This document shows, piece after piece, positions 1,592 through 20,924 of a DNA stretch of 64,000 bases. Made by a program: the position numbers and the translations under genes. The notes under the pieces are model-generated. The model saw only the letters and a program-made list of their open reading frames with translations. It had not been told where the DNA came from and did not search any database. Position 1 is the first letter of the stretch. Every line of letters starts with the position of its first letter. This DNA is from Obrimoposthia wandeli. Taxonomy: Eukaryota. The stretch covers positions 1 through 64,000 of the forward strand of contig CDROCS010000546.1 of the NCBI GenBank assembly GCA_977020255.1, written 5' to 3'.

Positions 1592-2228
1592 ATGGATCAA
1601 GACGCTCAACCTAAGCCTAAACGCGTATCACGCAAACTCTGAAACGAAAATACTGCTGGCCATGAAGATAACCATTAAGCGCAATTTGGCTTTCAGGGCG
1701 GCTTGAGTAGCCACGATTGCCGAACAGTCGGGCCTGACTAAGCAAAACTTACTTTATTACTTTCCATCCAAAGAAGTTCTCTACCAGCGTGTGTTAGAAA
1801 ACATCCTCGAGTTATGGATCGATAAAATGGCGCTGCTAGAACAGCGCGGTGACGACCCTAAGTCGATGCTCAGCAGCTATATTCGCGGTAAAATTGAGAT
1901 ATCACAAAGCCATCCTAACGGTTCAAAAGTATTCGCCAATGAATTGATTCACGGTGCACCTCGCTTAAAATCACACTTGCAAGAGCATCTTCTTCCCCAG
2001 CTTGAGGCCGATGTTAAATTGATCCGCACTTGGATCAGCGATGGTAAAATGGATGACGTCGATCCCTACCATTTATTTTTCATGATATGGGCTAGTACCC
2101 AGACCTACGCTGACTTTTCATCGCAAATCGAACTAGCACTCGGAAAACCTAAACTAGAAGAGCAGGATTTTGAGACCGCGGTGGAATTCCTCACGACCAT
2201 GATTCTCAAAGGCTTGGGAATCTCTTAA
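1592..2228 (+). CDS. rutR: RutR-like TetR-family regulator; 5' part (about 1640-1706) is frame-disrupted (pseudogene or assembly error)
   Basis: HTH VATIAEQSGLTKQNLLYYFPSKE from 1707. C-terminal FANELIHGAP and DPYHLFFMIWASTQTYADF closely resemble RutR. Fragments KILLA and AQFGFQG lie in different frames upstream. Confidence 0.8.
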
Positions 2229-2602
2229 CTCTCTAAAGGCAATATGCTTTGCGCTGAAAAACACGAGTAGTTCGACTACTCGTGAGCCTTAACCTGGGCA
2301 AGTACATCTCCTCAAAAATACGCTGACTTTTCATCGCAAATCGCACTAACAATTGGAAAACCAATGCTAGAAGAGCAGGATTTTGAGACCGCGGTGGAAT
2401 TCCTCACGACCATGATTCTCAAAGGCTTGGGAATCTCTTAACTCTCTAAAGGCAATATGCTTTGCGCTGAAAAACACGAGTAGTTCGACTACTCGTGAGC
2501 CTTAACCTGGGCAAGTACACCTCCTCATAAAATACGCTGACTTTTCATCGCAAATCGCACTAATAATTGGAAAACCAATGCTAGAAGAGCAAGATTTTGA
2601 GA
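2107..2602 (+). repeat. Tandem duplication, about 2.3 copies of a 213-214 bp unit (rutR 3' end plus hairpin)
   Basis: acgctgacttttcatcgcaaatcg starts at 2107, 2320 and 2534. Confidence 0.95.
2262..2284 (+). terminator. Hairpin after rutR (second copy at 2475-2497)
   Basis: cacgagtagt-tcg-actactcgtg, a perfect 10-bp stem. Confidence 0.55.
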
Positions 2603-2860
2603 TAGGGCCCAGCCCCCTAACCCAATGATGCTGAAGGTTGAGCCTTGTCAGCCTTTTCGAGCAATTTAGCCACTCGTACAGTATCTACCCCCTCCACTTC
2701 GATAACTTTGGCTAGCTTTAACGAGCAGAAATATAGCCCCCTAGATTTTCCCTCTCTGTGGCTCCTTGCACTTAATCTCACCAAACGCTTTGCTTAATCT
2801 TTAGCCAAAACAAACTAACTCATTGTTAAACAATGATATTAAATTTATCAAAATTAACTA

Positions 2861-2876
2861 TTGACCAACTGGTCAA
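2861..2876. promoter_or_regulatory. RutR-type operator, box 1
   Basis: TTGACCAACTGGTCAA is an exact match to the E. coli RutR consensus TTGACCAnnTGGTCAA. Confidence 0.85.
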
Positions 2877-2893
2877 GTACTGGATAGTATATA

Positions 2894-2909
2894 TTGACCA
2901 AACGGTAAA
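2894..2909. promoter_or_regulatory. RutR-type operator, box 2
   Basis: TTGACCAAACGGTAAA has 2 mismatches to the consensus and starts 33 bp after box 1. Confidence 0.7.
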
Positions 2910-3016
2910 ACTTTAGTTAAAAAGTAACACTGTAAAAACAACGAATAATAAATATAAAACGAGATCACTAACCGCCGTATTTTGCGGAATAGGATACTCG
3001 GTGTTGGAGAATTGGC

Positions 3017-4144
3017 ATGCTATCTATGGCACAGGCACTGGCTCTTGAAGGAGTGAGTGGCTCTGAACTCGATCAATTACGGCTACAAGCAAGCGCTGTG
3101 CGTGAATTGCACTGGGGCGATATCGTCACCTACTCGCGCAAGGTGTTTGTTCCACTGACCAATATGTGCCGTGACACTTGTACTTACTGTACTTTCGTCA
3201 AGCACCCAGATTCCCCCCTAGCCAACATAATGACCCCTGCACAAGTTATGAATGTGGTTGAGCAAGGGCAGAAAATGGGCTGTAAAGAAGTACTTTTCAG
3301 TTTGGGAGAAAAGCCCGAACGACGCTACGCGAAAGCCAAAGAAATGCTGGGGAACTTAGGTTACCAGCACATGACGGACTACTTGCACGATGTCTGCCAG
3401 CAAGTAATAGATGAGAGCGACATGCTACCTCACATCAACGTTGGCACCATGAGTTCAGACGAAATCCGTTTGTTAAAGCCAGTCAGTGCCAGCATGGGGA
3501 TGATGTTAGAAACCGTGTCAAAACGTTTACTCGTCAAAGGTAATGTCCATTACGCCTGTCCTGACAAAGTACCGCGTCAACGTTTACGTACCCTAGAGCG
3601 CGCCGGCAAGTTAGATGTCCCTTTCACCACCGGTATTTTGATCGGTATTGGTGAAAACTGGCAGGAACGCATTGAGAGCCTCATCGCGATCAACGAAATC
3701 CACCAGCAGTACGGTCATATTCAAGAAGTTATCGTCCAGAATTTTTGCGCCAAACCAGACACTGGAATGGCCAATGCTCCCGAGCCTGACCTAGATGACA
3801 TGTTGCGTACACTCGCCGTAGCCCGTCTTATTTTAGATCCCTCTATCAGCTTGCAAGCTCCACCGAATTTACAGGCCCGCTACAGCGCTTACCTAAACTC
3901 TGGAATCAACGATTGGGGCGGTATCTCGCCATTGACGTTAGATCACATCAATCCAGAGCGTGCCTGGCCGCAGATCGAGCAACTGGCGCAGGCCAGTGCG
4001 GAGAATAATTATCGCTTGCAAGAGCGTCTGGCTATTTACCCAAGCTATCAAAATTTACCCGAGCGCTATTTAAACGACAACATCGCGCATCGCGTTAGCA
4101 GTATTGCTCGCGCTGATGGCCTCGCAGCCGTGCAGTGTCTATAA
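3017..4144 (+). CDS. cofG: FO synthase subunit CofG (radical SAM)
   Basis: TYSRKVFVPLTNMCRDTCTYC (CxxxCxxC), SMGMMLE, PFTTGILIGIGE, IQEVIVQNF, GINDWGGISP. RBS ggaga upstream. Confidence 0.9.
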   Translation: MLSMAQALALEGVSGSELDQLRLQASAVRELHWGDIVTYSRKVFVPLTNMCRDTCTYCTFVKHPDSPLANIMTPAQVMNVVEQGQKMGCKEVLFSLGEKPERRYAKAKEMLGNLGYQHMTDYLHDVCQQVIDESDMLPHINVGTMSSDEIRLLKPVSASMGMMLETVSKRLLVKGNVHYACPDKVPRQRLRTLERAGKLDVPFTTGILIGIGENWQERIESLIAINEIHQQYGHIQEVIVQNFCAKPDTGMANAPEPDLDDMLRTLAVARLILDPSISLQAPPNLQARYSAYLNSGINDWGGISPLTLDHINPERAWPQIEQLAQASAENNYRLQERLAIYPSYQNLPERYLNDNIAHRVSSIARADGLAAVQCL

Positions 4145-4234
4145 AAGATGTACCCATGTTATTTGCACAGCAGATAGCGGCGCCAAAACAATAACAGCAG
4201 CTCGCTAATCACCAATGCAGCCATAGCGCACAAG

Positions 4235-5485
4235 GTGTTAGAGCAGCGAGAGAGGAAAGCCGACGTGAAGATTGAACAGATTCATAACAACACGACAGCA
4301 AATATCAACTGGCCGAGTGTCAGCCCAACCACTGCCGCTATTTTGCAAAGCGCACTGGCTGGGGATGAAGTGAGCGAAGCACAGGGTACTCACCTTTTTA
4401 TGTGTCTTGGCGATGATGTTAAGGCCATTACCCAGTGTGCCGATATTTTGCGCCAGCGCGCCGTCGGCGACAGTGCCAGCTACGTCATTACCCGCAATAT
4501 CAACTTCACCAACATTTGCTACATGGGCTGTAAATTCTGCGGTTTCGCCAAACGTAAAACCGCCGCTGAAGCTGAACTATTACCCATGGCAGAAATTGCC
4601 AAGCGCGCTCAAGAGGCGTGGGACCGAGGCGCCACTGAAGTCTGTATTCAAGGTGGCTTACACCCAGACCTACGCCCGGAACACTACCGTGAAATACTGT
4701 TAACCATTAAAGCTCAAGTGCCTGACATGCACATTCACGCCTTCTCGCCATTTGAAATTTGGTATGGCGCACTCAAAAGCAAGTTGTCATATCGTGAATT
4801 CATTCAAGATTTGATGGATTGTGGCCTAGGTTCAATGCCCGGCACCGCAGCAGAAATTCTCGATGTAGAAATTCGTCAACAACTCACTCGTGACAAGTTG
4901 ACCACCGCACAGTGGGTCGAAATCATTAGTACTGCGCATCAACTCGGCTTGCCGACAACGTCAACGATTATGTACGGCCATATCGATCAGCCCCATCACT
5001 GGTCAGCTCACATTGCGCTACTACGTGACATGCAAAAACAACACGGCGGTTTCACTGAGTTCGTGCCGCTAGGTTTTGTGCACTACGAATCACCACTGTA
5101 CACCGATCGTAAAAAGCTAAAATTGAATGTCCGCCCCGGACCTACCGAGCGCGAAAATATTCTGATGCACGCCGTGTCACGCATCATGCTCAACGGTTGG
5201 ATCGATAATATCCAGGCCTCTTGGGTCAAATTAGGTCCCGACTATGCCCGTCAAATGCTTAGATCTGGCGCCAATGATTTGGGCGGTACATTAATGGATG
5301 AAAGTATTACTCGCTCATCAGGCGGCACCCACGGTGAAGAAATATCCCCAGAGCAGATGCAGCAGATGGCACATGATGCTGGCTTATCGCCCTATCGTCG
5401 CAGTACTTTATACGCAGAATTAGAACGCTTTCCACTCACCGTGAATAACAATTTGATTGCCACCTCTCGCGGGGCTGTTGCATGA
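4235..5485 (+). CDS. cofH: FO synthase subunit CofH (radical SAM); start codon uncertain
   Basis: RNINFTNICYMGCKFC, EVCIQGG, HAFSPFE, SMPGTAAEIL, NIQASWVK, ANDLGGTLMDESI. Confidence 0.9.
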   Translation: MLEQRERKADVKIEQIHNNTTANINWPSVSPTTAAILQSALAGDEVSEAQGTHLFMCLGDDVKAITQCADILRQRAVGDSASYVITRNINFTNICYMGCKFCGFAKRKTAAEAELLPMAEIAKRAQEAWDRGATEVCIQGGLHPDLRPEHYREILLTIKAQVPDMHIHAFSPFEIWYGALKSKLSYREFIQDLMDCGLGSMPGTAAEILDVEIRQQLTRDKLTTAQWVEIISTAHQLGLPTTSTIMYGHIDQPHHWSAHIALLRDMQKQHGGFTEFVPLGFVHYESPLYTDRKKLKLNVRPGPTERENILMHAVSRIMLNGWIDNIQASWVKLGPDYARQMLRSGANDLGGTLMDESITRSSGGTHGEEISPEQMQQMAHDAGLSPYRRSTLYAELERFPLTVNNNLIATSRGAVA

Positions 5486-6441
5486 GCCAGAAAATCTTAT
5501 TATTAGCAGGGGGCGTCGGCGGTGCCAAAATGGCCGAAGGCTTATTGCACTCTAGCGCTGGCGAGCAATTCAGTATTTTAGGTAACATTGCTGATGATCA
5601 AGAAATTCACGGCCTTTGGGTATCACCTGACATAGATACTGTCACTTATACTTTAACCGATCGTATCGATCGCGAAAAAGGCTGGGGCTTAAAGAGTGAG
5701 AGTAATCGGACCTTAGATGCACTCAATACTTTAGGTGCTGACACGTGGATGTACTTGGGCGATCAGGATTTTGCCACTCATATCTACCGTACTGAACAGC
5801 GCAAAAAGGGACTGCGTCCCAGTGTGATCGCCGCCGATATCGCACAGAAACTCGGCCTCACTGTTCCATTGTTGCTACCCACCGATGACATCGTACAAAC
5901 CAAGCTTAATACCGATTTGGGTTGGCTCGATTTTCAAAGCTATTTTGTGCGTCATCAGTGCAGCCCACAGATTAATCATATCGTCTTTGAAGGAGCTACC
6001 CAAGCGAGTGCGACACCTGAGGCACTGGCGGCCATTGGCGAAGCTGATATTATTATTTTCGCCCCGAGTAATCCTATTGTCAGTATTGGGGCAATTTTAG
6101 CGGTTCCCGCTATCAAGCAAGCTATCGCTGAGAGTAAGGCTTATAAATTGGCAGTATCACCCTTAATTGGCGGTAAAACCGTTAAAGGTCCTGCAGATGA
6201 CATGCTACGTGCCAGCGGTATCCGCTGTGATTCATTAGGTGTGGCGCAGCACTATCGCGATTTAATAGACGCCATCGTGATCGATCAATGTGACAACCAA
6301 CTCAGTGCCCCCATCGAAGCGCTAGGTTTAGCCGTACATAGCAGCCAAACTTTGATGCAAAACCGTCAAGATAAAATCGCGCTAGCCGAATTTTTATTAC
6401 AGTGTGTCCCAAGTTCACAAACACAGCGGGAGGCTTGCTAA
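5482..6441 (+). CDS. cofD: Phospholactate/phosphoenolpyruvate transferase CofD (FbiA)
   Basis: LAGGVGGAK, SPDIDTVTYTL, LGDQDFATH, APSNPIVSI, VSPLIGG and KGPA motifs. ATGA overlap with cofH. Confidence 0.93.
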   Translation: MSQKILLLAGGVGGAKMAEGLLHSSAGEQFSILGNIADDQEIHGLWVSPDIDTVTYTLTDRIDREKGWGLKSESNRTLDALNTLGADTWMYLGDQDFATHIYRTEQRKKGLRPSVIAADIAQKLGLTVPLLLPTDDIVQTKLNTDLGWLDFQSYFVRHQCSPQINHIVFEGATQASATPEALAAIGEADIIIFAPSNPIVSIGAILAVPAIKQAIAESKAYKLAVSPLIGGKTVKGPADDMLRASGIRCDSLGVAQHYRDLIDAIVIDQCDNQLSAPIEALGLAVHSSQTLMQNRQDKIALAEFLLQCVPSSQTQREAC

Positions 6442-7136
6442 TGCGATCCGGTAAAGGCCTTTGCATTGTCATCCCGATGAAAAATCCACAAGACTCAAAG
6501 CAACGATTGCGTTCAGTGCTCGGTAGTAATGAGCGCCAATCACTGGCATTGATTCTGTTTAATCAAACTCTAAATTTTCTACGTCGGCACTTTAACACCA
6601 CCGATGTTCTGGTCGTGACTCCCTCACAGCGTATTGCTGATATGAGTCACAACCTTGGGGCTCGCAGCTTGCTGGAAGATGCATTGCCTAAACACGATGA
6701 GCGAGACCTCAACGGAGCGCTTTCAGGTGCTGCGCTGTGGTGCTGCGAGCAAGGTTATAGCAGCCAGCTTATTTTACCTGCTGACATTGTCGATCTCGAC
6801 TTTGTGGAGCTGCAACAACTCATTGCCGGAAAAATCACTGCCCCGAGTGTCACTATTTGCCCGGCAAGTGATGGCGGTACCAATGCACTACTCACGAGTC
6901 CGCCGGATATTATTCCCTTCAGCTATGGCTTCAATTCCAGCACACAACACTCTTTGGCGGCCAGTATTCAGGGGATAGAGCCGCGCCTACTTAAGTTGGA
7001 AAAACTCGCTTTTGATTTAGACACCCCGCGCGATTACCAAAGCGCCTGTGGCCACTCAGTTATTGGCAATTCACTGGCACAACTAGCGCAACACAGTCAT
7101 CAGCAAAACCGCAAACAACACAGGGCATCCCTATGA
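6441..7136 (+). CDS. cofC: Guanylyltransferase CofC (FbiD)
   Basis: VIPMK..SKQRL, PADI, GGTNAL, F.YG..S..H and DLDTPRD motifs. ATG at 6441 overlaps the cofD stop. Confidence 0.9.
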   Translation: MRSGKGLCIVIPMKNPQDSKQRLRSVLGSNERQSLALILFNQTLNFLRRHFNTTDVLVVTPSQRIADMSHNLGARSLLEDALPKHDERDLNGALSGAALWCCEQGYSSQLILPADIVDLDFVELQQLIAGKITAPSVTICPASDGGTNALLTSPPDIIPFSYGFNSSTQHSLAASIQGIEPRLLKLEKLAFDLDTPRDYQSACGHSVIGNSLAQLAQHSHQQNRKQHRASL

Positions 7137-7936
7137 ACTCACCTGCACAGATAGCCACCGAGGTAGAACAGGTACAGATGCTTGCCATTACCGGTATTCC
7201 AGACATTGTCCCTGGAGACGATTTAGCCACTGAGATCCTCAAGGCAATGCAAGGATTGTCACTCTCACTGCGCGATGGTGACATTTTAGTGATTGCCCAC
7301 AAGGTGGTCTCTAAAGCAGAGGGACGGATCGTTAAATTGGCCGATGTAACCCCCAGTGAGCAAGCATTAGAACTCGCGCAAAAACTCAACAAAGACCCAG
7401 CTAAAGTACAGTGTGTCTTAGATGAATCAACTCGGATAGTACGCGCCAACAAGCGTCCCGATCAGGATGAAGGTTTAATTATTGCCGAACATAAACTCGG
7501 CTTTATTTGCGCTAACGCCGCTGTCGATGAGTCCAATGTCGACCAACCCGGTCACGTTATTTTATTACCTAAAGACCCCGATCACAGCGCACGTCAAATT
7601 TGCGCTGCGCTTGAGCGCACCACTGATACGCAGATCGGCATCGTGATCACTGACACATTTGGTCGTCCTTGGCGCACCGGCTTAGTTAATGTCGCCATTG
7701 GTTTAGCGAATGTGCCGAGCAACGTCAACATGGCGGGTGAATCTGACGCTTACGGTCGTGAACTGCGTGTGACTGTGCCCGCATTGGCAGATGAGCTGGC
7801 CGCAGCATCTGGCCTATTAATGAGCAAAGAGGGTAAAAAGCCGGTGTTGTTATTTCGTGGTGTACCTTGGCAGCGTTGCCAGAGCAGCGCTCGCGATTTA
7901 ATACGCCCAGCAACAGAAGATTTATTTAGACAGTAA
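7133..7936 (+). CDS. cofE: Coenzyme F420-0:L-glutamate ligase CofE, single domain with no nitroreductase
   Basis: [30 protein letters not shown] and [10 protein letters not shown] motifs. 267 aa. Confidence 0.92.
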
Positions 7937-7974
7937 GCAGTAGCAAACTAATTTCACACAGAGGAAAAATAACA

Positions 7975-8646
7975 ATGACAATAGCTATTCTCGGCGGAAC
8001 AGGCCCTCAAGGTAAAGGATTAGCACTGCGTTTTGCCAAAGCAGGTGTCGATGTCATTCTCGGTTCGCGCGATGCAGCGCGCGCCGCCGATATCGCCAGT
8101 GAACTCAACGCCGCTATTCCAGGTGCGCCCGGTACAATTAGCGGCAGCGATAATATAAGCGCGGTGCAAGGCGCAAAAGAACATGTTGTGCTAGCAGTCC
8201 CTTATAGCGCGCACAACGCCACGCTTAATGATATTAAAGCGGACTTGGCGGGCAAGATACTGATCGACATTGTCGTACCGCTAAAAGATGGCGACCCCAA
8301 AGCGGTCGACATGCCGGTGGAAGGTTCTGCAACTGAAGCCGCACAGGCGATACTGGGGGCAGACATTCCAGTGGTCGGTGCCCTGCACAATGTCTCTGCT
8401 ATTTCTTTGAATAAGCTAGACGTTCCAATCAACTGCGATATTTTGGTGTGCGGTAACAATTTAGCGGCCAAGGAGAAAGTGATCACCCTCGTTCAAACTC
8501 TTGGCGTGCAAGCCTATAACGTTGGCCCTGCCGTCAACGCGCGCTGCGTCGAGGCGATCACCCCGATCCTTATACGTCTCAACATTTCCAAGAAAGTCCC
8601 TTTCTCCCACGCTGGGATAAAGATATGTGCACCACAAGATCATTAA
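7975..8646 (+). CDS. npdG: NADPH-dependent F420 reductase (Fno/NpdG)
   Basis: [36 protein letters not shown] and ALHNVSA motifs. Located in the cof operon. Confidence 0.9.
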
Positions 8647-8789
8647 GAAGCTTTTGATTTAAGTTTCAAAACAAACAATAAAAAACGAGTGCTGATTTAC
8701 CTCAGTTCTCATTTGTCTCGGTGCTGATAGATAGTCTTTCAGATGATGCTATCACGCCTCACTAACGAGAGTTTTCTCAGGAGTTAAAC

Positions 8790-9794
8790 ATGGAATTTGG
8801 TATTACATTTAAAGGGTTTGTCGAGCCACAAAGAGCACGTAATTTAGTGAGACAAGCGGAAGAAGCTGGCTTTACCCACTGCTGGTTTTACGATTCGCAT
8901 GTATTGTGGCGCGAGTGCTACCCCGCCATTGCAATGTGCATGGAGCACACCACTAAAATGAAGTTCGGCCCCTGTGTAACTAACCCTAATTCACGCGATT
9001 GGTCAGTGGCTGCCAGCTTATTTGGCAGCTTGGCTAAGCAGAGTAACGGTCGCTTTGTCGTCGGTCTTGGCCGCGGTGACAGCGCAATGCGTGTCATGGG
9101 TAAAAAACCAGCCAACTTGGCACGTGTTGCTGAATTCACTCAAAAAGTTAAAGCGATGGTGCGCGGTGAAGAAGTGCAATACGGTGAGAGCCCAGAGCCG
9201 GTAAAATTCCCTTGGGCAGATGGCTATGAACTACCTATACACATTGGCGCCTACGGTCCTAAAGCCCTAAAAACAGCGGGCGAAGTAGGTGACGGTGTTA
9301 TTTTGCAAATTGCCGACCCTTCACTGGTTAAATGGTTTGCCGAGCAGGCAATCAGTGCCGGTAAAGAAGCGGGGCGTGATATGTCGAACTTCCAAGTTAT
9401 CGCCTCTGCTCCCGCATACATGGGTGACATGGATAAATGCCGTGAAGCGACACGTTGGTTCCCTGCGATGGTCGGTAACCACGTGGCTGATATCGTCGAA
9501 AAATACGGTGCCCACTCAGGTTTAGTGCCAGAAAGTTTGACCAATTATATCGAGCAGCGTAAAGGCTATGATTATTCAAAACACGGTCAGAGCGACAATC
9601 CATACTTGGATTTCATCACCAATGACATCATCGACAGCTTCAGCGTATTAGGTGAGCCAGATGCCCACATCAAGAAGATACAAGAGTTAGAAGCCGTTGG
9701 TACTACCCAGTTCAATATCTATCTGGATAGCGGTGATGAAGAGCAAATTATTGCCGATTATGCCAACAAGATCATTCCAGCTTTTCGCAAGTAA
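8790..9794 (+). CDS. Luciferase-like (LLM), probably F420-dependent oxidoreductase resembling the CPS_4043 (TIGR03842) family
   Basis: Mer-like TIM barrel: AEEAGF..CWFYDSH, GPCVTNP..R, GRF.VGLGRGDS, GAYGPKAL..AGEVGDG. Family name is recalled and not HMM-checked. Confidence 0.8.
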   Translation: MEFGITFKGFVEPQRARNLVRQAEEAGFTHCWFYDSHVLWRECYPAIAMCMEHTTKMKFGPCVTNPNSRDWSVAASLFGSLAKQSNGRFVVGLGRGDSAMRVMGKKPANLARVAEFTQKVKAMVRGEEVQYGESPEPVKFPWADGYELPIHIGAYGPKALKTAGEVGDGVILQIADPSLVKWFAEQAISAGKEAGRDMSNFQVIASAPAYMGDMDKCREATRWFPAMVGNHVADIVEKYGAHSGLVPESLTNYIEQRKGYDYSKHGQSDNPYLDFITNDIIDSFSVLGEPDAHIKKIQELEAVGTTQFNIYLDSGDEEQIIADYANKIIPAFRK

Positions 9795-9803
9795 TTGAAA
9801 GAA

Positions 9804-9825
9804 ATGCGCGGTACCTACCGCGCAT
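9804..9825 (+). other. Intercistronic hairpin without U-tract
   Basis: atgcgcggta-cc-taccgcgcat, a perfect inverted repeat between the LLM gene and the hydrolase. Confidence 0.6.
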
Positions 9826-9840
9826 CACAGGACAAATCCG

Positions 9841-11073
9841 ATGAAAGACATAAAAGTTAACGGCCAGCGTCTCTGGGATAGCTTGATGGAAATGGCTAAG
9901 ATTGGCGCCACTGAAAAAGGCGGCGTCTGCCGTTTAGCCCTCACCGATTTAGACCGAGAAGGTCGCGACCTTTTCGTCGCTTGGTGTAAAGAGGCTGGCT
10001 GCACAATCAAAATTGATAAAATGGGTAACATCTTTGCCCGCCGTGCCGGTAAAAATAACGACCTACCACCCGTTGTAATGGGCAGTCATTTAGACACTCA
10101 GCCCACGGGTGGTAAGTTCGATGGAATTTACGGTGTGCTGGCAGGGCTTGAAGTTATTCGCACCCTCAACGATAACAACATTGAGACCGCCGCTCCGATA
10201 GAAGCGTCTGTGTGGACCAATGAAGAGGGATCACGTTTTCCGCCTGCCATGGTTGCCTCTGGTGTGTTTGCCGGTGTCTTCGATCTAGAATACGGTTTGA
10301 GCCGCGCTGATCTCGATGGAAAAACCATGGGAGAAGAATTAGAGCGTATCGGCTACGCGGGCGCTGAAGAAATGGGCAACCGCACGATCAAAGCGTTCTT
10401 TGAGGCTCATATCGAACAGGGCCCTATTTTAGAGGACGAGAACATCACTATTGGTGTTGTCACCGATGCGCAAGGACAGCGCTGGTATGAAGTGCGCTTA
10501 ACCGGACAGGAAGCACACGCCGGACCCACTCCGATGTCGCGCCGCAAAGATGCGCTAGTCGGTGCCGCGCGTATTATTGATGAGGTAAACAGAATCGGCC
10601 TCGCCAATGCACCACTGGCTTGCTCAACGGTTGGTTTAATGCAGATACATCCCAATTCACGTAATGTCATTCCCGGCGAAGTTTTTTTCACCGTGGACTT
10701 TCGCCATCCAGATGATGCTGTGCTCTCTAAGATGGATAGCGCGTTACGCGAATTTGTCGCTAAAAGCAGTAAGGAGCTAGGGTTAGAACTAGATTTTCAA
10801 GAAATTTGGTACTCACCTCCTGTACCTTTTAATAAATCTTGTGTCGACTCAGTGCGCGAAGCGGCAAAAAAGGCTGGTTATAGCCACCGTGATATTGTCA
10901 GTGGCGCCGGTCATGACGCCTGCTATATCTCACGTGTTGCGCCTACTGCTATGGTATTTGTTCCCTGTGAAGGCGGCATCAGCCATAACGAAATCGAAAA
11001 CGCTGAGCCAGAGCATCTAGAAGCTGGCTGTAACGTATTGATTCAGGCAGTATTGCTACAAGCAAACGATTAA
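9841..11073 (+). CDS. M20-family Zn-dependent hydrolase, beta-ureidopropionase / N-carbamoyl-L-amino acid amidohydrolase (PydC-like)
   Basis: RLWDSLMEMAKIGAT, GSHLDTQPTGGKFDG, WTNEEGSRF, EAHIEQGP, HAGPTPM, SGAGHDA and GGISHN motifs. Confidence 0.88.
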   Translation: MKDIKVNGQRLWDSLMEMAKIGATEKGGVCRLALTDLDREGRDLFVAWCKEAGCTIKIDKMGNIFARRAGKNNDLPPVVMGSHLDTQPTGGKFDGIYGVLAGLEVIRTLNDNNIETAAPIEASVWTNEEGSRFPPAMVASGVFAGVFDLEYGLSRADLDGKTMGEELERIGYAGAEEMGNRTIKAFFEAHIEQGPILEDENITIGVVTDAQGQRWYEVRLTGQEAHAGPTPMSRRKDALVGAARIIDEVNRIGLANAPLACSTVGLMQIHPNSRNVIPGEVFFTVDFRHPDDAVLSKMDSALREFVAKSSKELGLELDFQEIWYSPPVPFNKSCVDSVREAAKKAGYSHRDIVSGAGHDACYISRVAPTAMVFVPCEGGISHNEIENAEPEHLEAGCNVLIQAVLLQAND

Positions 11074-11270
11074 TCACGACGCTGGCGTACTCTCGCCAGC
11101 GACTTTTCCACCTGCCACCGGCCCTCGTCAAAAACCGCTTCTGATTACCTCCCCACTGACCATCTAAACAAGCGTTTTACTAAAAAGATCAATATGTACC
11201 TTAGGACACTACCTTTAAACTGAACGCTATATTAACATTGCCTGAATATAAAATTACTGAGGACACGGCG

Positions 11271-12924
11271 ATGGGTAACCCTTACTTGCGCGAAGCTAAC
11301 AATTTAAAGGCCGCATTTGTAGCCAGTAGCCAAAATATCTCTGAAACTCAGGTTGTTGATGCGAGAGGTTTAAGCTTTAAGCAGATGATCACTGAATTTA
11401 CCGAGATCAACTTTCCCAGTGGTAGAAATTTAAAGCAAAAAATAAATTGGGCTCGGGCTAATTTTTCAGATCAAATAAGCGCTGAAGATTACGGTCAAGT
11501 TCCAAAGAATAAAAACCGTGCCTGGAAAAAATGGAAGAAATTGATATCTGCCGCTATTCTCGAGGATGTCGCTGCTAATCAACTCCCTCTGGAAGAAGTT
11601 AATCCTGTCGTAAGACCAGAAGTAGTCGAACCAGAGATGGAAGCTGTCAGCACTAGCGAAATTAAAGCTAAACCTGAGCCTGAAATTACGGTTAACCCCG
11701 CGCCTCCTGCCGAAGTAATCGACGCTGTCAGCACTGGCGAAATTAAAGCTAAACCTGAGCCTGAAATTACGGTTAATCCCGCGCCTCCTGCCGAAGTAAT
11801 CGATGCTGTCAGCACTGGCGAAATTAAAATTAAACCTGAGCCTGAAATTACGGTTAACCCCGCGCCTCCAGCCGAAGTACTTGGTGCTGTTAGTACTAGC
11901 GAAATTAAAGCTAAACCTGAGCCTGAAATCACGGTTAACCCCGCGCCTCCTGCCGAAGTAATTGATGCTGTCAGCACTGGCGAAATTAAAGCTAAACCTA
12001 AGCCCGAAATTACGGTTAATCCCGCGCCTCCAGCTGAAGTACTTGGTGCTGTTAGTACTAGCGAAATTAAAGCTAAACCTGAGCCTGAGCCTGAAATTAC
12101 GGTTAATCCCGCGCCTCCAGCTGAAGCACCCATAATGATGCTTAAAAAGCAAACCCTGAGCCTGACATTACGGTTAATCAAGTAATTGATGCTGTCAGCA
12201 CTGGCGAAATCAAAGCTAAACCTGAGCCAGAAATTACGGTTAATCCCGCGCCTCCTGCCGAAGTAATTGATGCTGTCAGCACTGGCGAAATCAAAGCTAA
12301 ACCTGAGCCAGAAATTACGGTTAATCCCGCGCCTCCTGCCGAAGTAATTGACGCTGTCAGCACTGCTAAAGCTAAACCTGACGAAATCACGGTTAATCCT
12401 ATGCCTCCTGCCGAGAATTTGACGCTGTCAGCACTGGCGAGATCAAGCCTAAACCTGAACCCGAAATCACGGTTAACCCCGCACCTCCAACCGAAGGACT
12501 TGATGCTGTCAGTACTGGAGAAATTAAACCTGACCTTGGCGTTACGGTTAATCCAGCTCCCCCTATTATTCAACCCGAATTGGCCACCATGACTTCGCTT
12601 CTTATGCCTGAACATGACGTCATGATCATCACTAACCCAATGCCATTATTCGAAGATAATAGTTTTATAGGGATCAGCGACATCAAATCTGAGACTGAAG
12701 TGTCTGCTAGCCCTATTCTGATAAGTCCAATGTTAGATATACATTTAGATGACATGCTAGATATGTCCATTGATGATATATCCGCAGCACTGGCTAGTTT
12801 GAGTGCACCATTGGCCAGTGCTGCGCACTCAGAACCGCTGGAGCAACCTATGGCTCACTTTGATCAGGGAATCCTTTCTGCAAACGCTGACTTAGTAAGA
12901 GACGATTTAGTGGTAGATGCGTAA
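11271..12924 (+). CDS. Hypothetical protein with Pro/Glu-rich 27-aa tandem repeats, interrupted by two frame changes inside the repeat
   Basis: RBS gagga before ATG 11271. The repeat is read in one frame to about 12125, a second from about 12182 and a third from 12421, which runs into the acidic tail ending at 12924. Confidence 0.6.
11643..12563 (+). repeat. 81-bp coding tandem repeat (AVSTGEIKAKPEPEITVNPAPPAEVID), about 12 units
   Basis: Unit starts at 11643, 11724, 11805, 11886, 11967, 12048, a degenerate unit near 12135, then 12191, 12272, 12353, 12424 and 12505. Confidence 0.95.
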
Positions 12925-13677: not shown

Positions 13678-13848
13678 ATCTTACCTGCGATTAGCATTCG
13701 TTATTTCGGGTAAAGGATTTTCTGCGCAAACAGTTTTGCATCTTTAAGATGCGCCAAAACAACAGAACGGGAATAAAGTAAAACTCTGCTTCTCTGTTGT
13801 TCTCTCTTAGCTTTATACTTCGTGCTCAATAGGGATAGGTGTAAGCTC

Positions 13849-14298
13849 ATGAATGAGAATAAAAACAACGTTAAAACAATATTACAGTGGGCCGCGGGGA
13901 TCGTCGTTCTGCTAGTTATTTATATCACTAGTACGACTATGTCATGGGCGCCTGATACGAAAACCCATCGCAGTTCAAACTATAATGGAATCGACTACAC
14001 CATCCGCATTTATTACTTTCCCGCTCGCAAGGAAGCCGCTATTGCGATGGCAGAATATTTTAGCCGTGACAAATATCGTATAGAAACAATACCGGCCTTA
14101 GAAGTCCCTAGCCTGCAAGATAAACGCTACGGTACCAGTTACCTGTATTTTAATAATGCAGATATTACTCAAGCACTACAGATAAAAAAACACTTGGAAC
14201 AGATCGTCGGCTTTCCCATTAACGGTTACCGTCGCAATGAGCCCGTGGTTGACCCTTCGATGATGTTTGTACTGACCGATAAAAGAGTCGACTCTTAA
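13849..14298 (+). CDS. Hypothetical membrane-anchored protein, paralog A
   Basis: One N-terminal hydrophobic helix. Clearly homologous to 15093-15569. Confidence 0.65.
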   Translation: MNENKNNVKTILQWAAGIVVLLVIYITSTTMSWAPDTKTHRSSNYNGIDYTIRIYYFPARKEAAIAMAEYFSRDKYRIETIPALEVPSLQDKRYGTSYLYFNNADITQALQIKKHLEQIVGFPINGYRRNEPVVDPSMMFVLTDKRVDS

Positions 14299-15092: not shown

Positions 15093-15569
15093 ATGCCTAT
15101 ACTAGGTAAAATTCCTAGGTCAACAAAAATGAACAGTACCCAAACAAAATTATTTTTACGCTGCCTTTTTGTCATCGTCGTCATATTATTGACCTATTTA
15201 ATTACTGTGCGCGTAACTGTCGATAAACCAACCACACCCAGTGAAGGTTTTGGTTTAAATAACCCTGAGTACTCAATCAAGGTTTATTACTTTCCCTCTA
15301 AGAAAAACGTCGCGATGGCATTGGCTGAATATTTTAGCCACGAAAAATATCGCATAACAATTGCATCAGCACTCTCTGAAAAAGAGCTCTTTGCTAAGCG
15401 CTATAGCCCTTACTACTTATTTTTTAACAACCAAGATACCGCGCAAGCGATGTCGATTAAAACTAAGCTAGAGCAAGTCATTGGTTATCCTATTAATGGT
15501 TACCGTCGTAGCAATGCGCTGTCATCACCCTCGATGATACTGGTGTTAACAGATAAGACGATGTCTTAA
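15093..15569 (+). CDS. Hypothetical membrane-anchored protein, paralog B (start may be 15129)
   Basis: Shares Y.I..YYFP.K..A.A.AEYFS..KYRI, PINGYRR and PSM..VLTDK with 13849-14298. Confidence 0.65.
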   Translation: MPILGKIPRSTKMNSTQTKLFLRCLFVIVVILLTYLITVRVTVDKPTTPSEGFGLNNPEYSIKVYYFPSKKNVAMALAEYFSHEKYRITIASALSEKELFAKRYSPYYLFFNNQDTAQAMSIKTKLEQVIGYPINGYRRSNALSSPSMILVLTDKTMS

Positions 15570-15605: not shown

Positions 15606-16721
15606 TTAATTTAGTTCGATCCAACACTGATTGTCGTTGGATCGCCAAGCGGCATCGATAATTTCACTGACCGCTAAACCATCGCTAAACTGTGGCCATT
15701 TTGTATGACCGCTGTCGATAGCCGCTAAAAAATCTCTAGCTTCCAAAATTAACTGATCCTGATAACCCGTGCCATGCCCCGGTCCCTCACAAAACAGCCC
15801 GTAATCGGGATGGTCAGTACCCGTTAGTATTTTGCGAAACCCTCGCTGTGCCTCCGGACCTTCATTCAAATAAAGCCACAATGCATTTTGATCCTCTTGA
15901 TCAAAGCGCAAGGCACCTTTAGTACCACTGACTTCGTAGGCAAAACCCATCTTGCGTCCAGTGGCAATACGGCTAAAGGATAAATGCCCGCTAAAACCTT
16001 TGGCAAACGTGCAGATAAACTGTCCTTGGTCATCGTTCGTCACTTCTTGCTGACCCTTTTTAGGCGGCCGTAATGAGTGCACCGTTTCTATCTGAGCGCA
16101 CAGTTTACTTATAGGTCCCATCAAAAACAGCGCCGCGTTAATCATATGAGGCGCTAAGTCCCCCATCGTACCGTTTGCCCTATCACAGGTGCGCCAGCTG
16201 GCCATCTGCTGTGGGTCGGCATAAAAATCTTCGCTGTGTTCACCGCGAAAATAGGTGATATCACCCAACACACCTGAATCAATCAGCTGTTTGGCATATT
16301 GAGTCGCTGGGGTGCGTATATAGTTAAAACCAAGCATATTGACGGTATTATTCTGTGCCGCCAAAGAGACCATCTCACGAGCATCCTCTAGTGAGCCGCC
16401 CAATGGCTTTTCACACAGTACGGGTTTGCCAAGTTTGGCAGCTAGACGGTAGATTTCGCAATGTGTTTGCTGTGGACTGGCGATCACTATCGCCTCAACT
16501 TTAGGGTCTTCTACCAATGTTTGCCAATTCGCTGTCGATCGTTTGAAGCCGAGTTCTGCTGCTTTGATAGCAGCACCTTCAGTCGTCGTGGTGCAGATCA
16601 TTTCACACACTGGTCGTAAATATGTATTACACAGTGCACCGACTGCCTGCAGCGCAACCGCATGGCGTTTTCCCATATAACCCGCGCCGATTACTCCAAT
16701 ACCTATCGCCTTAGTTGTCAT
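15606..16721 (-). CDS. Gfo/Idh/MocA oxidoreductase (inositol dehydrogenase-like)
   Basis: IGVIGAGYMG and VLCEKPL motifs. Lies in the iol cluster. Confidence 0.85.
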   Translation of the reverse strand: MTTKAIGIGVIGAGYMGKRHAVALQAVGALCNTYLRPVCEMICTTTTEGAAIKAAELGFKRSTANWQTLVEDPKVEAIVIASPQQTHCEIYRLAAKLGKPVLCEKPLGGSLEDAREMVSLAAQNNTVNMLGFNYIRTPATQYAKQLIDSGVLGDITYFRGEHSEDFYADPQQMASWRTCDRANGTMGDLAPHMINAALFLMGPISKLCAQIETVHSLRPPKKGQQEVTNDDQGQFICTFAKGFSGHLSFSRIATGRKMGFAYEVSGTKGALRFDQEDQNALWLYLNEGPEAQRGFRKILTGTDHPDYGLFCEGPGHGTGYQDQLILEARDFLAAIDSGHTKWPQFSDGLAVSEIIDAAWRSNDNQCWIELN

Positions 16722-17554
16722 TTATCTTCACCTAAGATTGTTAAAATACGCAGCGCTTCCTCTTCAATATATGGCATCAGCTTTTGCATAAAATATTGGC
16801 GATCGTACTGCTCGGGCTCTTCGTTCATTAGACGCCGCAGGTTAGTGCCAATCACTTGACGAAGAGAGGTGCCTACATTGAATTTTGCCACTGCACTGCG
16901 TTTAAGTGTCAGTAAATCCGCATCTCGAATTCCCGACGTCCCATGGATTACCAGTGGGACGTCTACTAACTGTTCAATACGTTGTAATCGATCGAAATCA
17001 ATTGTGCTACTCGGTGTCGATAAACGATGGATATTACCGACCGCCACTGCCACACAATCTATACCACTTTCACTGGCATAACGCGCCGCTTCTTCTGGTT
17101 CACTAAAGACAGATTTAATGTGATCGCGACCCTCTTCATAGGGCACTGAGCCAATTTCACCTTCGACGCTGATATTCAGCGCATGTGCAACTTGCACAAC
17201 CTGTTGAGTACGGCGAATATTTTCATTGAGAGATAGCTGCGAGCCATCGAACATCACCGAGCTATACCCTGCATCCATTGCCTGATAAACCACGGCCTCA
17301 TCGTAGCAATGGTCCAAATGCAAACACACAGGTGCACTACTTCGAGCGATCATCGGCAGTAACATACCCGCGAGTGTTTTCACTCCCAATTGCTCTACCA
17401 TATCCTTATTGGTTGCCAATATCACCGGACACTGTCGTTTTTGTGCCGCGTTAATAATCGCCTGTGCATCTTCAAAACCGAAAACATTACAGCAGGCAAT
17501 TGCGCCTTTACTGGCACTGGCTTGGGGAAGTATTTGATTGAGGTTAACTAACAT
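16718..17554 (-). CDS. iolJ: Class II aldolase, IolJ-like (6-phospho-5-dehydro-2-deoxy-gluconate aldolase)
   Basis: LHLDH, SSVMFDGS, VEGEIG, AVGNIH, LVIHGTSG and KFNVGT motifs. The iol context supports the symbol. Confidence 0.75.
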   Translation of the reverse strand: MLVNLNQILPQASASKGAIACCNVFGFEDAQAIINAAQKRQCPVILATNKDMVEQLGVKTLAGMLLPMIARSSAPVCLHLDHCYDEAVVYQAMDAGYSSVMFDGSQLSLNENIRRTQQVVQVAHALNISVEGEIGSVPYEEGRDHIKSVFSEPEEAARYASESGIDCVAVAVGNIHRLSTPSSTIDFDRLQRIEQLVDVPLVIHGTSGIRDADLLTLKRSAVAKFNVGTSLRQVIGTNLRRLMNEEPEQYDRQYFMQKLMPYIEEEALRILTILGEDK

Positions 17555-17634
17555 GCGTATCCTCTTTGTTACAGCACAATTCGGTGCTGCTCATCATTAT
17601 TGAGAGCTCATCGCCACGTCTAAGTAACTATGCG

Positions 17635-18486
17635 CTACTTAAATTTGGCCACCATATCTTTGATACCAGGGATCGTATGTACTTGATACTCGTGATGCGG
17701 ATCCCAGTATTGACGCAGCGATTTGGATTTCTCGCCCACGATAATAGTGAAGTAATACATTTCATAACCCGGGGCTGCAACGCTGGGGTGGTACCCTTTA
17801 TCAATGGCAATGACACTACCCGTTTTGACATGATATGCAGGGCCGCAGTCATCTTCATTTTCATAGAGAAACTGTGCCCCAAACCCCTTCCCTGGATTGA
17901 AACGAAATTGATATACCTCTTCGAAGCGTGTCTCCATCGGTGGCCGCTCTATATCATGTTTATGTGAGGGAAAACCTGACCACCCGCCGGCCCCTACTGT
18001 AAAGAGTTCACTCACCAGCAAACGGCCACGCAAGTCTGCATTCTTTTGTCCGAGTATGTGTTTTATTTTACGGTGTGTTTTGGTGTCATCGCTGCCATAT
18101 TGCACAGTGTCTTCCAACGTATCGCCATCACTCACCATAAAGGGTGTCAGCTGTTTATCGTAGCGACCGCCGGCGATAAATATATCTGCCTGTTCACTCG
18201 TACAATGAATAACCGCCTCTCTCGCTAAAGGAATATAAACTGAGGCCGGATCCCCGCTCCAAACATCTTTACGACGCCCTATATTAGTAAAAGACTCACC
18301 GGCAACTTCAATATCACAACGACCACCCGCTAACACCACTATTGACTCGTAATTATCTAGACAATAACGATAGCTCTCTCCAAGCTTTAAATGAACGTTG
18401 TTGAAATAACACAGCGGCGTCGTGTCATCATTTACATCGATAATCGCTTGGTTCTGATTGTCATATGGAGCGATATGCTTCCCCAT
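17635..18486 (-). CDS. iolB: 5-deoxy-glucuronate isomerase
   Basis: SELFTVGAGGWSGFPSHKHD, EEVY.FRF and GYHP motifs. Confidence 0.88.
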   Translation of the reverse strand: MGKHIAPYDNQNQAIIDVNDDTTPLCYFNNVHLKLGESYRYCLDNYESIVVLAGGRCDIEVAGESFTNIGRRKDVWSGDPASVYIPLAREAVIHCTSEQADIFIAGGRYDKQLTPFMVSDGDTLEDTVQYGSDDTKTHRKIKHILGQKNADLRGRLLVSELFTVGAGGWSGFPSHKHDIERPPMETRFEEVYQFRFNPGKGFGAQFLYENEDDCGPAYHVKTGSVIAIDKGYHPSVAAPGYEMYYFTIIVGEKSKSLRQYWDPHHEYQVHTIPGIKDMVAKFK

Positions 18487-18488
18487 GA

Positions 18489-19496
18489 TTAGTCTCCTGT
18501 TGTTATTTTATAGTTGTGTTGCGCCATAAACTCGATCAGCTGTCCTAAGTTAGGTAACGCTTGGGTACAGCTAGTACCTGCGACATTGATCGCTGCACTT
18601 GCAGCGCCCATAGCCACCGCATCTTCAAGAGAATAGGCATGCGTTAAGGCGTAAAGTAACGTACCTGCGAATGCATCACCGGCACCAAAAGGCTTCAGTG
18701 CTTGTACGTTGAATACCGGGCCTGCGAACGCCTCACCAATGGCCGGGTACACGTTGGATCCATCCTCTCCAGCTTTAATAATCACCAGCGAACAGCCCTG
18801 CTTCAAAAGTGCCTTCGCCCTCTTTTCATCTGTGCCAACTGCGTCTAAATCGATCACTTCAAGAATGTCAAATTCTTCCGTGTTGCCAATGACAACGTCA
18901 CAAAGTGCTACCGCCAATTGATAGTACAGTGAGGCAGTTTCAACATCTGGCCAAGAATATGCACGATAATCCATGTCTAGTACGACAAGCGTATTCACAC
19001 TGCGTGCACGTTTCATCGCTAGTAAAGTCGCCTCTCTTGATGGGCTTGCACACAGTGCTGTGCCTGAAATAAGCAGCATTTTTGCCTTGGCAATATAGTG
19101 AGTATCTATCTGCTGTACCCGCAGCGCTAAGTCTGCGGCACTGTTGCGGTAAAGTACGACTTCAGGCTGTTCTGGCTGCATTTGAGTGATTGCCAAACTC
19201 GTGCGCGTACCACTGCTATCGACCTGCATTCCATCGAGATTAACCCCTTGTTGGCGTAAATAATCACAGACGTAATCACCTAAACCATCTGCCGATACAC
19301 AGCCAATAAACCCGGCCTTACCACCAAGTTTTGCCACTGCCGTTGCAATATTGGCGGGTGAGCCGCCGACGTATTTATCAAAACCGCTAACCTCTCCCAA
19401 AGAGGTATGCGATTGTTGCGCGTATAGATCAACACCTGCTCGCCCCAGACAGATAACATCTAATTCACGGTTTTTCTCGAACGTTAACATCGCCAT
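18489..19496 (-). CDS. iolC: 5-dehydro-2-deoxygluconokinase (PfkB family), stand-alone
   Basis: LGRAGVDLY, GGSPANIA, DMDYR and GAGDAF motifs. 335 aa with no C-terminal aldolase domain. Confidence 0.88.
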   Translation of the reverse strand: MAMLTFEKNRELDVICLGRAGVDLYAQQSHTSLGEVSGFDKYVGGSPANIATAVAKLGGKAGFIGCVSADGLGDYVCDYLRQQGVNLDGMQVDSSGTRTSLAITQMQPEQPEVVLYRNSAADLALRVQQIDTHYIAKAKMLLISGTALCASPSREATLLAMKRARSVNTLVVLDMDYRAYSWPDVETASLYYQLAVALCDVVIGNTEEFDILEVIDLDAVGTDEKRAKALLKQGCSLVIIKAGEDGSNVYPAIGEAFAGPVFNVQALKPFGAGDAFAGTLLYALTHAYSLEDAVAMGAASAAINVAGTSCTQALPNLGQLIEFMAQHNYKITTGD

Positions 19497-19639
19497 CAGA
19501 TAACCTCCTTCACTGATTCATCAACACGATTCATTCCAGCCGATTGAATAGGTTGCGGTTTCGTATAGAGATCAACGCCAAGGCGCCCCAGACAGATAAC
19601 ATCCAATTCACGGTTTTTCTCTAACGCCAGCGGACTCAT
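19496..19639 (-). pseudogene. 47-codon relic duplicating the N-terminus of iolC
   Basis: MSPLALEKNRELDVICLGRLGVDLY versus IolC MAMLTFEKNRELDVICLGRAGVDLY. TGATG overlaps at both ends. Confidence 0.8.
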
Positions 19640-20826: not shown

Positions 20827-20924
20827 ACCTTCACTCGTTACATCGTGTAAAGGTCTCTTATTATTAATTTCTGCTAAATTCTGCTCGACTGGGCGTGTAA
20901 AATTTTATTGTGTATGCGATAGAC

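Follow-up and report, generated by a model that had tools for sequence, protein, structure and literature searches.

The reduction of uracil and thymine at the start of reductive pyrimidine degradation is carried out by NAD(P)H-dependent enzymes of the PreT/PreA (PydA) type, which act upstream of dihydropyrimidinase and beta-ureidopropionase and are often placed under RutR-type control. Variations on this reaction have been described. The ferredoxin-dependent clostridial PydAc, as cited from Wang et al. 2020 in PMC12507026, serves a Pyd pathway with a changed electron donor, and genetic work on mureidomycin biosynthesis has shown that a putative F420/FMN (flavin mononucleotide) oxidoreductase reduces the C5=C6 bond of uracil (PMC10714638). 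Here we describe a locus in a 64,000-nucleotide stretch of DNA (the window; positions 1 to 64,000 of contig CDROCS010000546.1, assembly GCA_977020255.1, Obrimoposthia wandeli), in which a rutR-like gene and two RutR-type operators precede a run of genes for coenzyme F420, an oxidoreductase of the luciferase-like monooxygenase (LLM) class and an amidase of the M20 family. Judging from gene content, this is probably a uracil/thymine-responsive operon that makes F420 for a single LLM enzyme, which would reduce uracil and thymine and thereby replace PreT/PreA (PydA) as the first step. A full-text literature search, with subscription journals outside its coverage, returned no report of F420-dependent pyrimidine catabolism.

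A 2021 review notes that F420-dependent enzymes are unstudied in bacteria outside Actinobacteria and lists the reason for F420 synthesis in Proteobacteria as an open question; in Paracoccus denitrificans the cofactor was detected in traces only and termed niche-specific (PMC8498797).

The operon and its regulatory region

The operon comprises eight genes on the forward strand between positions 3017 and 11073. Gene identity was judged by NCBIfam models with their curated cut-offs, and all eight genes score above them:

3017-4144, + strand: cofG, FO synthase radical-SAM subunit (TIGR03550, 472 bits, cut-off 213)
4235-5485, + strand: cofH, FO synthase radical-SAM subunit (TIGR03551, 489 bits, cut-off 374)
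5482-6441, + strand: cofD, 2-phospho-L-lactate transferase (TIGR01819, 271 bits, cut-off 257)
6402-7136, + strand: cofC, guanylyltransferase (TIGR03552, 135 bits, cut-off 105)
7133-7936, + strand: cofE, F420-0:glutamate ligase (TIGR01916, 264 bits over 267 aa, cut-off 181)
7975-8646, + strand: npdG (Fno), NADPH-dependent F420 reductase (TIGR01915, 183 bits, cut-off 149.8)
8790-9794, + strand: LLM-class F420-dependent oxidoreductase (TIGR03842, CPS_4043; 504 bits, cut-off 295.45, aligned over residues 2-332 of 334)
9841-11073, + strand: M20 hydantoinase/carbamoylase-family amidase (TIGR01879, 442 bits, cut-off 204)

The run of genes thus agrees in order and position with the initial annotation of the window. 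The F420 biosynthesis set is represented by all five equivalog models (CofG, CofH, CofC, CofD and CofE), and NpdG/Fno is likewise assigned by its equivalog score. The genes are closely spaced throughout, the widest gaps being 143 bp between npdG and the LLM gene and 90 bp between cofG and cofH. The CofE protein is single-domain and has no FbiB-type C-terminal domain. The M20 protein matches the N-carbamoyl-beta-alanine amidohydrolase of PDB entry 8c46 with 487 bits and the yeast beta-alanine synthase 1r3n with 299 bits, which, together with its family membership, bears out its earlier description as a beta-ureidopropionase-like hydrolase. We propose that it is an N-carbamoyl-beta-alanine amidohydrolase (beta-ureidopropionase), its substrate specificity being predicted from these likenesses.

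Two sites between the rutR-like gene and cofG resemble the operator of Escherichia coli RutR, for which the consensus is TTGACCAnnTGGTCAA with positions 4 and 13 being the most important (PMC2475637):

2861-2876, no strand assigned: RutR box 1, TTGACCAACTGGTCAA, 14 of 14 consensus positions, a perfect palindrome
2894-2909, no strand assigned: RutR box 2, TTGACCAAACGGTAAA, 12 of 14 consensus positions, with positions 4 and 13 kept

The two boxes, both already pointed out in the initial annotation, are the sole matches to the consensus with at most two mismatches in the window, where 0.18 would be expected. Box 1 overlaps the -35 hexamer of a promoter-like site at 2861-2890, itself defined by a consensus match only, and box 2 sits just downstream of its -10 element, a layout that suits repression. 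Paired boxes with an identical 33-bp spacing are found in two related loci (L002 and L036). When all related loci described below and 30 kb of the window were searched at up to two mismatches (1.52 Mb in total), 93 matches to the consensus were found, against roughly 5-10 expected by a back-of-envelope estimate. Most of them lie upstream of cofG (32), the M20 gene (10), rutR (9), the NCS1 symporter gene (6), the dihydropyrimidinase gene (5) and pntAA (2). RutR-type boxes are therefore strongly enriched before cofG and the pyrimidine genes across taxa.

The region preceding the boxes contains the regulator gene and a duplication that includes its end:

1592-2228, + strand: rutR-like TetR regulator gene (Pfam TetR_C_3, 170 bits; best NCBIfam match RutR)
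2106-2602, + strand: tandem 213-bp repeat of about 2.3 copies, found by repeat search, comprising the rutR 3′ end and a terminator-like hairpin

The RutR-like TetR gene that had been annotated here holds up in its homology, which extends over the full length of RutR-like TetR proteins, but not as one open frame, since in the window only 1791-2228, the C-terminal 145 codons, is open. The break was located by tblastn and DNA alignment to intact relatives (L036, L002, L001 and L006) at approximately 1638-1712, where the window lacks 2 bp near 1638, has one inserted base each near 1677 and 1700, and reads TGA in frame at 1704-1706. Of the words sampled from this stretch, 88% are present in run X1, and an independent Logan contig of that run, the sole one over 1620-2188, departs from the window at 1638-1712 (+CA, +G, -2, -1, -1 and 12 substitutions), with one base different over the next 476 bp outside this interval. 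Applying the differences yields an uninterrupted 211-aa RutR-like protein that aligns with its relatives throughout. Because the contig differs exactly at the break and restores an intact frame, the break probably reflects a fault of assembly or consensus, or else a minor haplotype present at about half depth, and not the true state of the organism; a rutR pseudogene with a constitutive operon was for the same reason not built upon.

The copies of the 213-bp repeat, overlooked in the earlier reading of this upstream region, occupy 2106-2318 and 2319-2531, followed by a partial copy of 74 bp at 2529-2602, and are 96-100% identical, the two full copies 96%. The unit consists of the last ~125 bp of rutR and the hairpin CACGAGTAGTTCGACTACTCGTG, which is present twice, and a Logan contig runs across the junction of copies 2 and 3. 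In two related loci (L001 and L002) an open reading frame (ORF) of about 262 aa lies between rutR and cofG, in opposite orientations in the two.

The effector site of the regulator appears conserved as well. E. coli RutR contacts uracil through L74, W77, L78 and W167 (PMC4325133). The positions of L74, W77 and W167 are invariant in eight aligned proteins, and that of L78 is occupied by Leu, Ile or Met in the cluster-linked ones; the uracil-contact residues and the operators both agree with a RutR-like regulator.

Fold and residues of the LLM oxidoreductase

By its score the LLM protein belongs to the TIGR03842 family. The database names for the family are all generic, in keeping with the earlier remark that the CPS_4043 type is functionally unassigned, and within the coverage of the literature search, subscription journals excluded, no function for TIGR03842/CPS_4043 was found. 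An AlphaFold model based on 32 sequences has a mean predicted local distance difference test (pLDDT) score of 92.3 and a predicted template modelling (pTM) score of 0.92. The nearest solved folds are those of Mer from four methanogens, with template modelling (TM) scores of about 0.8 at 26-30% identity, followed by the F420-dependent alcohol dehydrogenase Adf, FGD2 and FGD1. The top 14 structural neighbours are all F420 enzymes, with FMN luciferases and monooxygenases ranking lower. The description of the protein as a Mer-like LLM oxidoreductase is therefore apt as regards the fold, yet the protein is not Mer itself, as it stays below both Mer equivalog cut-offs (144 versus 348.7 and 146.5 versus 276 bits) and has no Glu6.

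The functional positions of the Methanocaldococcus jannaschii Mer (jMer) were mapped via a HMMER alignment onto 22 LLM orthologues:

jMer Glu6 (catalytic): LLM position 6, Thr in 14 and Cys in 8 of the 22 orthologues, never Glu
jMer Val62 (backstop under F420 with a non-prolyl cis-peptide): LLM Val63, invariant
jMer Asp96 (contacts the pterin pyrimidine ring): LLM Asp97, invariant
jMer carboxamide after strand beta-6 (contacts substrate and F420): LLM Gln173
jMer Phe233 (hydrophobic, substrate side): LLM Met227

In jMer the E6Q mutant retains 0.4% of kcat (PMC11094777). Met227 of the LLM protein is located within a family-specific W223-F224-P225-x-M-V-x-N230-H231 stretch, and a second conserved insertion with R257, Y260, D261, Y262 and H265 has no counterpart in Mer. 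As the residues on the F420 side are kept and Glu6 and the substrate-side segments are changed, the protein seems to have preserved its cofactor side and remodelled the one that faces the substrate. The LLM protein is predicted to use F420 as its cofactor, given its place in an operon with cofGHDCE and npdG, a model that resembles the folds of F420 enzymes, and the kept Val63, Asp97 and Gln173. In dihydroorotate dehydrogenases and dihydropyrimidine dehydrogenase, a Ser or Cys serves as the acid/base at the pyrimidine C5, and we speculate by analogy that the Thr or Cys found in place of Glu6 could act in this way.

Gene neighbourhoods of related loci

Relatives of the LLM protein were sought in 185,579 species-representative genomes, one genome per species, of which at least 583 encode a close relative; in metagenomes the relatives form thousands of clusters at 90% identity. 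The best 80 of the at least 583 loci, chosen by LLM similarity, served for comparison. Their LLM proteins are 74-97% identical, and the taxa include Oceanospirillaceae, Marinomonas, Halomonas/Vreelandella, Amphritea, Colwellia, Vibrio, Alteromonas, Marinobacter, Thalassolituus and Halieaceae, as well as Paracoccus, Ensifer and Limimaricola among the alphaproteobacteria. The DNA of the window is merely 70-79% identical to its nearest relatives. Neighbours were counted in those 57 loci whose flanks extend 8 kb or more on each side of the LLM gene, by calling and clustering ORFs, annotating the recurrent clusters and tallying them again by tblastn:

rutR: 54 of 57 loci
M20 amidase: 50 of 57
M20 or nitrilase-type (CN_hydrolase) beta-ureidopropionase: 51 of 57
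NCS1 nucleobase:cation symporter: 41 of 57
dihydropyrimidinase (TIGR02033, 607 bits): 26 of 57
pntA: 20 of 57
YdcZ-type membrane protein: 14 of 57
methylmalonate-semialdehyde dehydrogenase: 13 of 57
omega (beta-alanine-type) aminotransferase: 10 of 57
ribA: 6 of 57
Tsx nucleoside channel: 6 of 57
cytosine deaminase and permease (codBA): 4 of 57

The initial annotation had held that neighbourhoods unrelated to pyrimidine genes would speak against its proposal. The opposite is seen, as rutR or at least one pyrimidine gene is present in 56 of the 57 loci, and the LLM homologues are found beside dihydropyrimidinase, beta-ureidopropionase-type hydrolases, nucleobase permeases, RutR and genes of beta-alanine catabolism, and never beside preT or preA. 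Nucleobase uptake, cytosine deamination, ring opening, decarbamoylation, transamination and semialdehyde oxidation are all encoded around the LLM gene. The only step of the reductive pathway missing from this inventory is the conversion of uracil or thymine to the dihydro form, which is why we propose the LLM protein for it. A tblastn search with PreT and PreA of E. coli (NC_000913) gave no match at E<=1e-3 in the window or in the 80 loci with their 1.5 Mb of flanks. Paired ORFs of about 420 aa that were considered as PreT/PreA candidates proved to be cytosine deaminase/permease, DadA/alanine racemase, helicase or transposase.

Several gene arrangements are informative. First, in four loci with no cof genes nearby the LLM gene lies directly 3′ of the dihydropyrimidinase gene, at distances of 14 bp in two Halieaceae (L043 and L050), 80 bp in L041 and 43 bp in L075, with NCS1 divergent and rutR and an M20 or CN-hydrolase gene alongside. 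Next, in L028 the LLM gene is followed after 29 bp by a nitrilase-type beta-ureidopropionase gene and then by NCS1 and dihydropyrimidinase. By this adjacency the LLM gene holds the usual position of pydA. Finally, in P. denitrificans DSM 413 (L062) an NCS1-dihydropyrimidinase-M20 unit is divergent from cofG-cofH-cofD-cofC-cofE-npdG-LLM-rutR. Of the less frequent neighbours, PntAB fits a putative role in supplying NADPH to NpdG, and ribA fits one in supplying the FO precursor.

The composition of the operon itself varies. In eight loci of Amphritea and relatives (L054-L059, L064 and L068) the interval from rutR to cofH, at about 4000-5700, holds an ORF of ~75 aa and no detected cofG, and in L017 cofG is located about 10 kb downstream, so the genes for FO synthase subunits are sometimes detached from the operon. 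The conservation of the LLM protein was set aside as an argument, since its median identity of 78% (M20, 75%; NpdG and the Cof proteins, 44-69%) is biased by the selection of the loci for LLM similarity.

The same neighbourhoods bear on several other explanations. Since a neighbourhood gives membership in a pathway and not the step, the LLM protein could belong to the RutR/pyrimidine regulon and catalyze a different F420H2-dependent step, such as the RutE/YdfG-like reduction of malonate or methylmalonate semialdehyde or of another by-product, the uracil reductase being encoded elsewhere; the preTA search, which covered the flanks and the window, leaves room for this. However, semialdehyde removal is already served by the co-clustered aminotransferase and the CoA-acylating dehydrogenase, uracil reduction is the sole step with no other candidate in any of the 80 loci, and the LLM gene sits in operons with dihydropyrimidinase, all of which makes this explanation rather unlikely.

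The cluster might instead act on other cyclic ureides, such as 5-substituted hydantoins, dihydroorotate-like compounds or a purine-derived intermediate, which the LLM protein would reduce and the hydantoinase and carbamoylase hydrolyse. D-hydantoinase and M20 carbamoylases are promiscuous, NCS1 permeases also carry hydantoins and allantoin, and a putative F420 LLM has been proposed to act on a uric-acid-derived intermediate in Chloroflexota (PMC12507026). We nevertheless consider this unlikely, as the operators fit the RutR consensus and the uracil contacts of RutR are conserved, cytosine deaminase/permease, Tsx, the beta-alanine-type aminotransferase and methylmalonate-semialdehyde dehydrogenase co-cluster, and the M20 protein is closest to a characterised N-carbamoyl-beta-alanine amidohydrolase.

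Another concern is that F420 may be made for general or unrelated redox reactions, the pyrimidine genes being linked to it by chance or as part of a hitch-hiking island. The distribution in the gamma- and alphaproteobacteria is patchy and looks horizontally mobile, with LLM proteins 75-97% identical across classes. However, many genera that differ in gene order share the linkage and the RutR operators, and the LLM gene stays by the pyrimidine genes where the cof genes are not adjacent, so an incidental association seems quite unlikely.

The alternative in the initial annotation, that LLM and NpdG are an F420 analogue of RutA/RutF in O2-dependent cleavage of the uracil ring, draws on RutA being luciferase-like, of the same fold family and under RutR, and on the parallel between NpdG and the flavin reductase RutF. 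It fares poorly: the RutA model is absent from the 16 NCBIfam matches (E<=1e-5), neighbours of the rutB, C, D, E or G type are absent from the 29 annotated clusters (among them all those in at least 10 of the 80 loci), and dihydropyrimidinase, which is useless in the Rut route, is common. Moreover, the F420 hydride-transfer folds are nearer than those of FMN monooxygenases, and F420, which carries electrons strictly in pairs, reacts only poorly with O2. We regard this alternative as highly improbable. The neighbourhoods, the operators and the modelled fold together lend support to the first proposal of that annotation, an F420H2-dependent uracil/thymine reductase that replaces PreTA.

Other genes lie near the operon in the window. 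A gene of the Ldh_2 family (malate/L-lactate dehydrogenase-like) at 363-1397 on the - strand lies directly upstream of rutR; it was considered as a supplier of the lactyl linker, but its position is kept only in L036 and it is not counted in the system. In the region 11238-12924, 3′ of the M20 gene, a 315-aa ORF (11238-12185) has as its only counterpart a 425-aa ORF in L002; it was rejected as a member of the system, being without a family match and common only to that locus. Further downstream lie the following:

13822-14298 and 15093-15569: a pair of paralogous ORFs of 158 aa, neither of them matching Pfam, where the GC content is low (38-44%, against ~49% in the operon)
15606-22802, - strand: a myo-inositol catabolism-like run of two GFO/IDH/MocA oxidoreductases, a class II aldolase, a KduI/IolB protein, a PfkB kinase and a 625-aa ORF, the first five genes being named by Pfam only

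Proposed pathway and comparison with known systems

The substrate of the LLM protein, repression by the RutR-like protein and induction by uracil are what we infer from the gene identities, operators, neighbourhoods and fold described above. In the proposed scheme, the RutR-like repressor, bound to the two operators over the promoter, would keep the operon off and leave upon binding of uracil or thymine. CofG, CofH, CofD, CofC and CofE would then make F420, which NpdG, as expected from its family membership, would reduce with NADPH, in many relatives topped up from NADH by PntAB. In the LLM protein, F420H2 would give a hydride to C6 of uracil or thymine, with protonation at C5. A dihydropyrimidinase, of the family identified in the clusters of the relatives, would open the dihydropyrimidine ring, and the M20 amidase would free beta-alanine or beta-aminoisobutyrate, NH3 and CO2.

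Several observations weigh against this scheme. Dihydropyrimidinase, permease and pntAB genes were not found within the window. Neither a gene for making 2-phospholactate nor a dehydro-F420-0 reductase was identified in the cluster, nor was an origin of the F420 linker (2-phospholactate, phosphoenolpyruvate or 3-phosphoglycerate); the CofC of P. denitrificans favours 2-phospholactate in vitro (PMC8764529). The rutR copy is frame-broken as assembled, and the intact RutR-like proteins of the clusters reach 186-192 bits against the equivalog cut-offs of 368 and 230 (TIGR03613 and NF011584), on which the E. coli RutR control scores 386 and 464 bits. As they are also only about 40% identical to E. 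coli RutR, "RutR-like" is the correct label for them. The preTA negative spans the flanks and the window, so redundancy instead of replacement is possible. The case for the function of the LLM protein is one of guilt by association in comparative genomics. A 50%-identity LLM homologue (P0121) is found in another context, on an 8.4-kb contig (ENA ERZ25067264). Since it lies there without pyd genes, the functional assignment is limited to tight orthologues, above ~74% identity. Its neighbours are a 446-aa luciferase-like protein, an isochorismatase-family protein (the family of RutB) and an amidase, and the contig may represent a different nitrogen-heterocycle catabolic cluster.

With these points taken into account, a reductase role for the LLM protein is still the interpretation that we favour, and we lean, with some caution, towards its wider form, in which F420 in hundreds of marine and soil Proteobacteria would be a pyrimidine-inducible, single-purpose cofactor that feeds a non-homologous F420H2-dependent dihydropyrimidine dehydrogenase through a supply line from NADH via NADPH to F420H2 made up of Fno and, often, PntAB, with all of F420 biosynthesis under a uracil sensor. 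A pyrimidine-repressed operon of this kind would explain the trace amounts of F420 in P. denitrificans in ordinary media. If true, the proposal gives a concrete answer to why many Proteobacteria make F420 and a function for the very large TIGR03842 family. Dihydropyrimidine dehydrogenases would then be of three kinds, the new one having no relation to the other two and neither iron-sulfur (Fe-S) clusters nor flavin. In addition, it is rare for an entire cofactor pathway to be governed by the regulator of the catabolic route that it serves, and this would be one such case. The proposal also bears on how nucleobase nitrogen is recycled in the sea and on biocatalysis with F420.

Compared with PreT/PreA, the LLM protein would catalyze the same reaction at the same place in the pathway, but there is no homology between them. 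It is a luciferase-like (beta/alpha)8 protein without Fe-S, flavin adenine dinucleotide or FMN domains, and has homology neither to the dihydroorotate dehydrogenase-like FMN and 4Fe-4S protein PreA nor to the GltD-like PreT, so that the claim is one of working like this enzyme and not of being one. The hydride would come from F420H2, which calls for a dedicated cofactor operon and Fno. PydAc remains an FMN-containing PydA homologue, whereas here the enzyme family itself would be replaced. With Mer (PDB 1z69 and 8qpl) the LLM protein shares the backstop Val, the Asp96/97 and the carboxamide after beta-6, and differs from it in the Thr or Cys for Glu6 and in the W223-F-P-x-M-V-x-N230-H231 motif and the R257/Y260/D261/Y262/H265 insertion that replace the substrate side. 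The RutA/RutF pair of the E. coli Rut pathway has in common with the LLM protein the superfamily, the RutR regulator, a pyrimidine substrate and a partner reductase, but RutA is an FMN- and O2-dependent ring-cleaving monooxygenase, and in the loci considered here the partners are those of the reductive pathway and not of Rut.

Two functional parallels come from other pathways. NpsU/SSGG-03002, which takes part in making napsamycin and mureidomycin, has a uridyl-peptide antibiotic as its putative substrate in the secondary metabolism of Streptomyces, and its assignment has a genetic basis (PMC10714638). The uricolytic F420-dependent luciferase-family "yanthine" reductase of Chloroflexota follows the same logic as proposed here, with an F420 LLM standing in for a PydA-like reductase before a cyclic amidohydrolase; it belongs to a purine pathway in another phylum and a different gene cluster, and is likewise a bioinformatic prediction (PMC12507026). 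What would be new in the present locus is an unrelated enzyme, together with a dedicated cofactor operon, in place of the dihydropyrimidine dehydrogenase of a known pathway.

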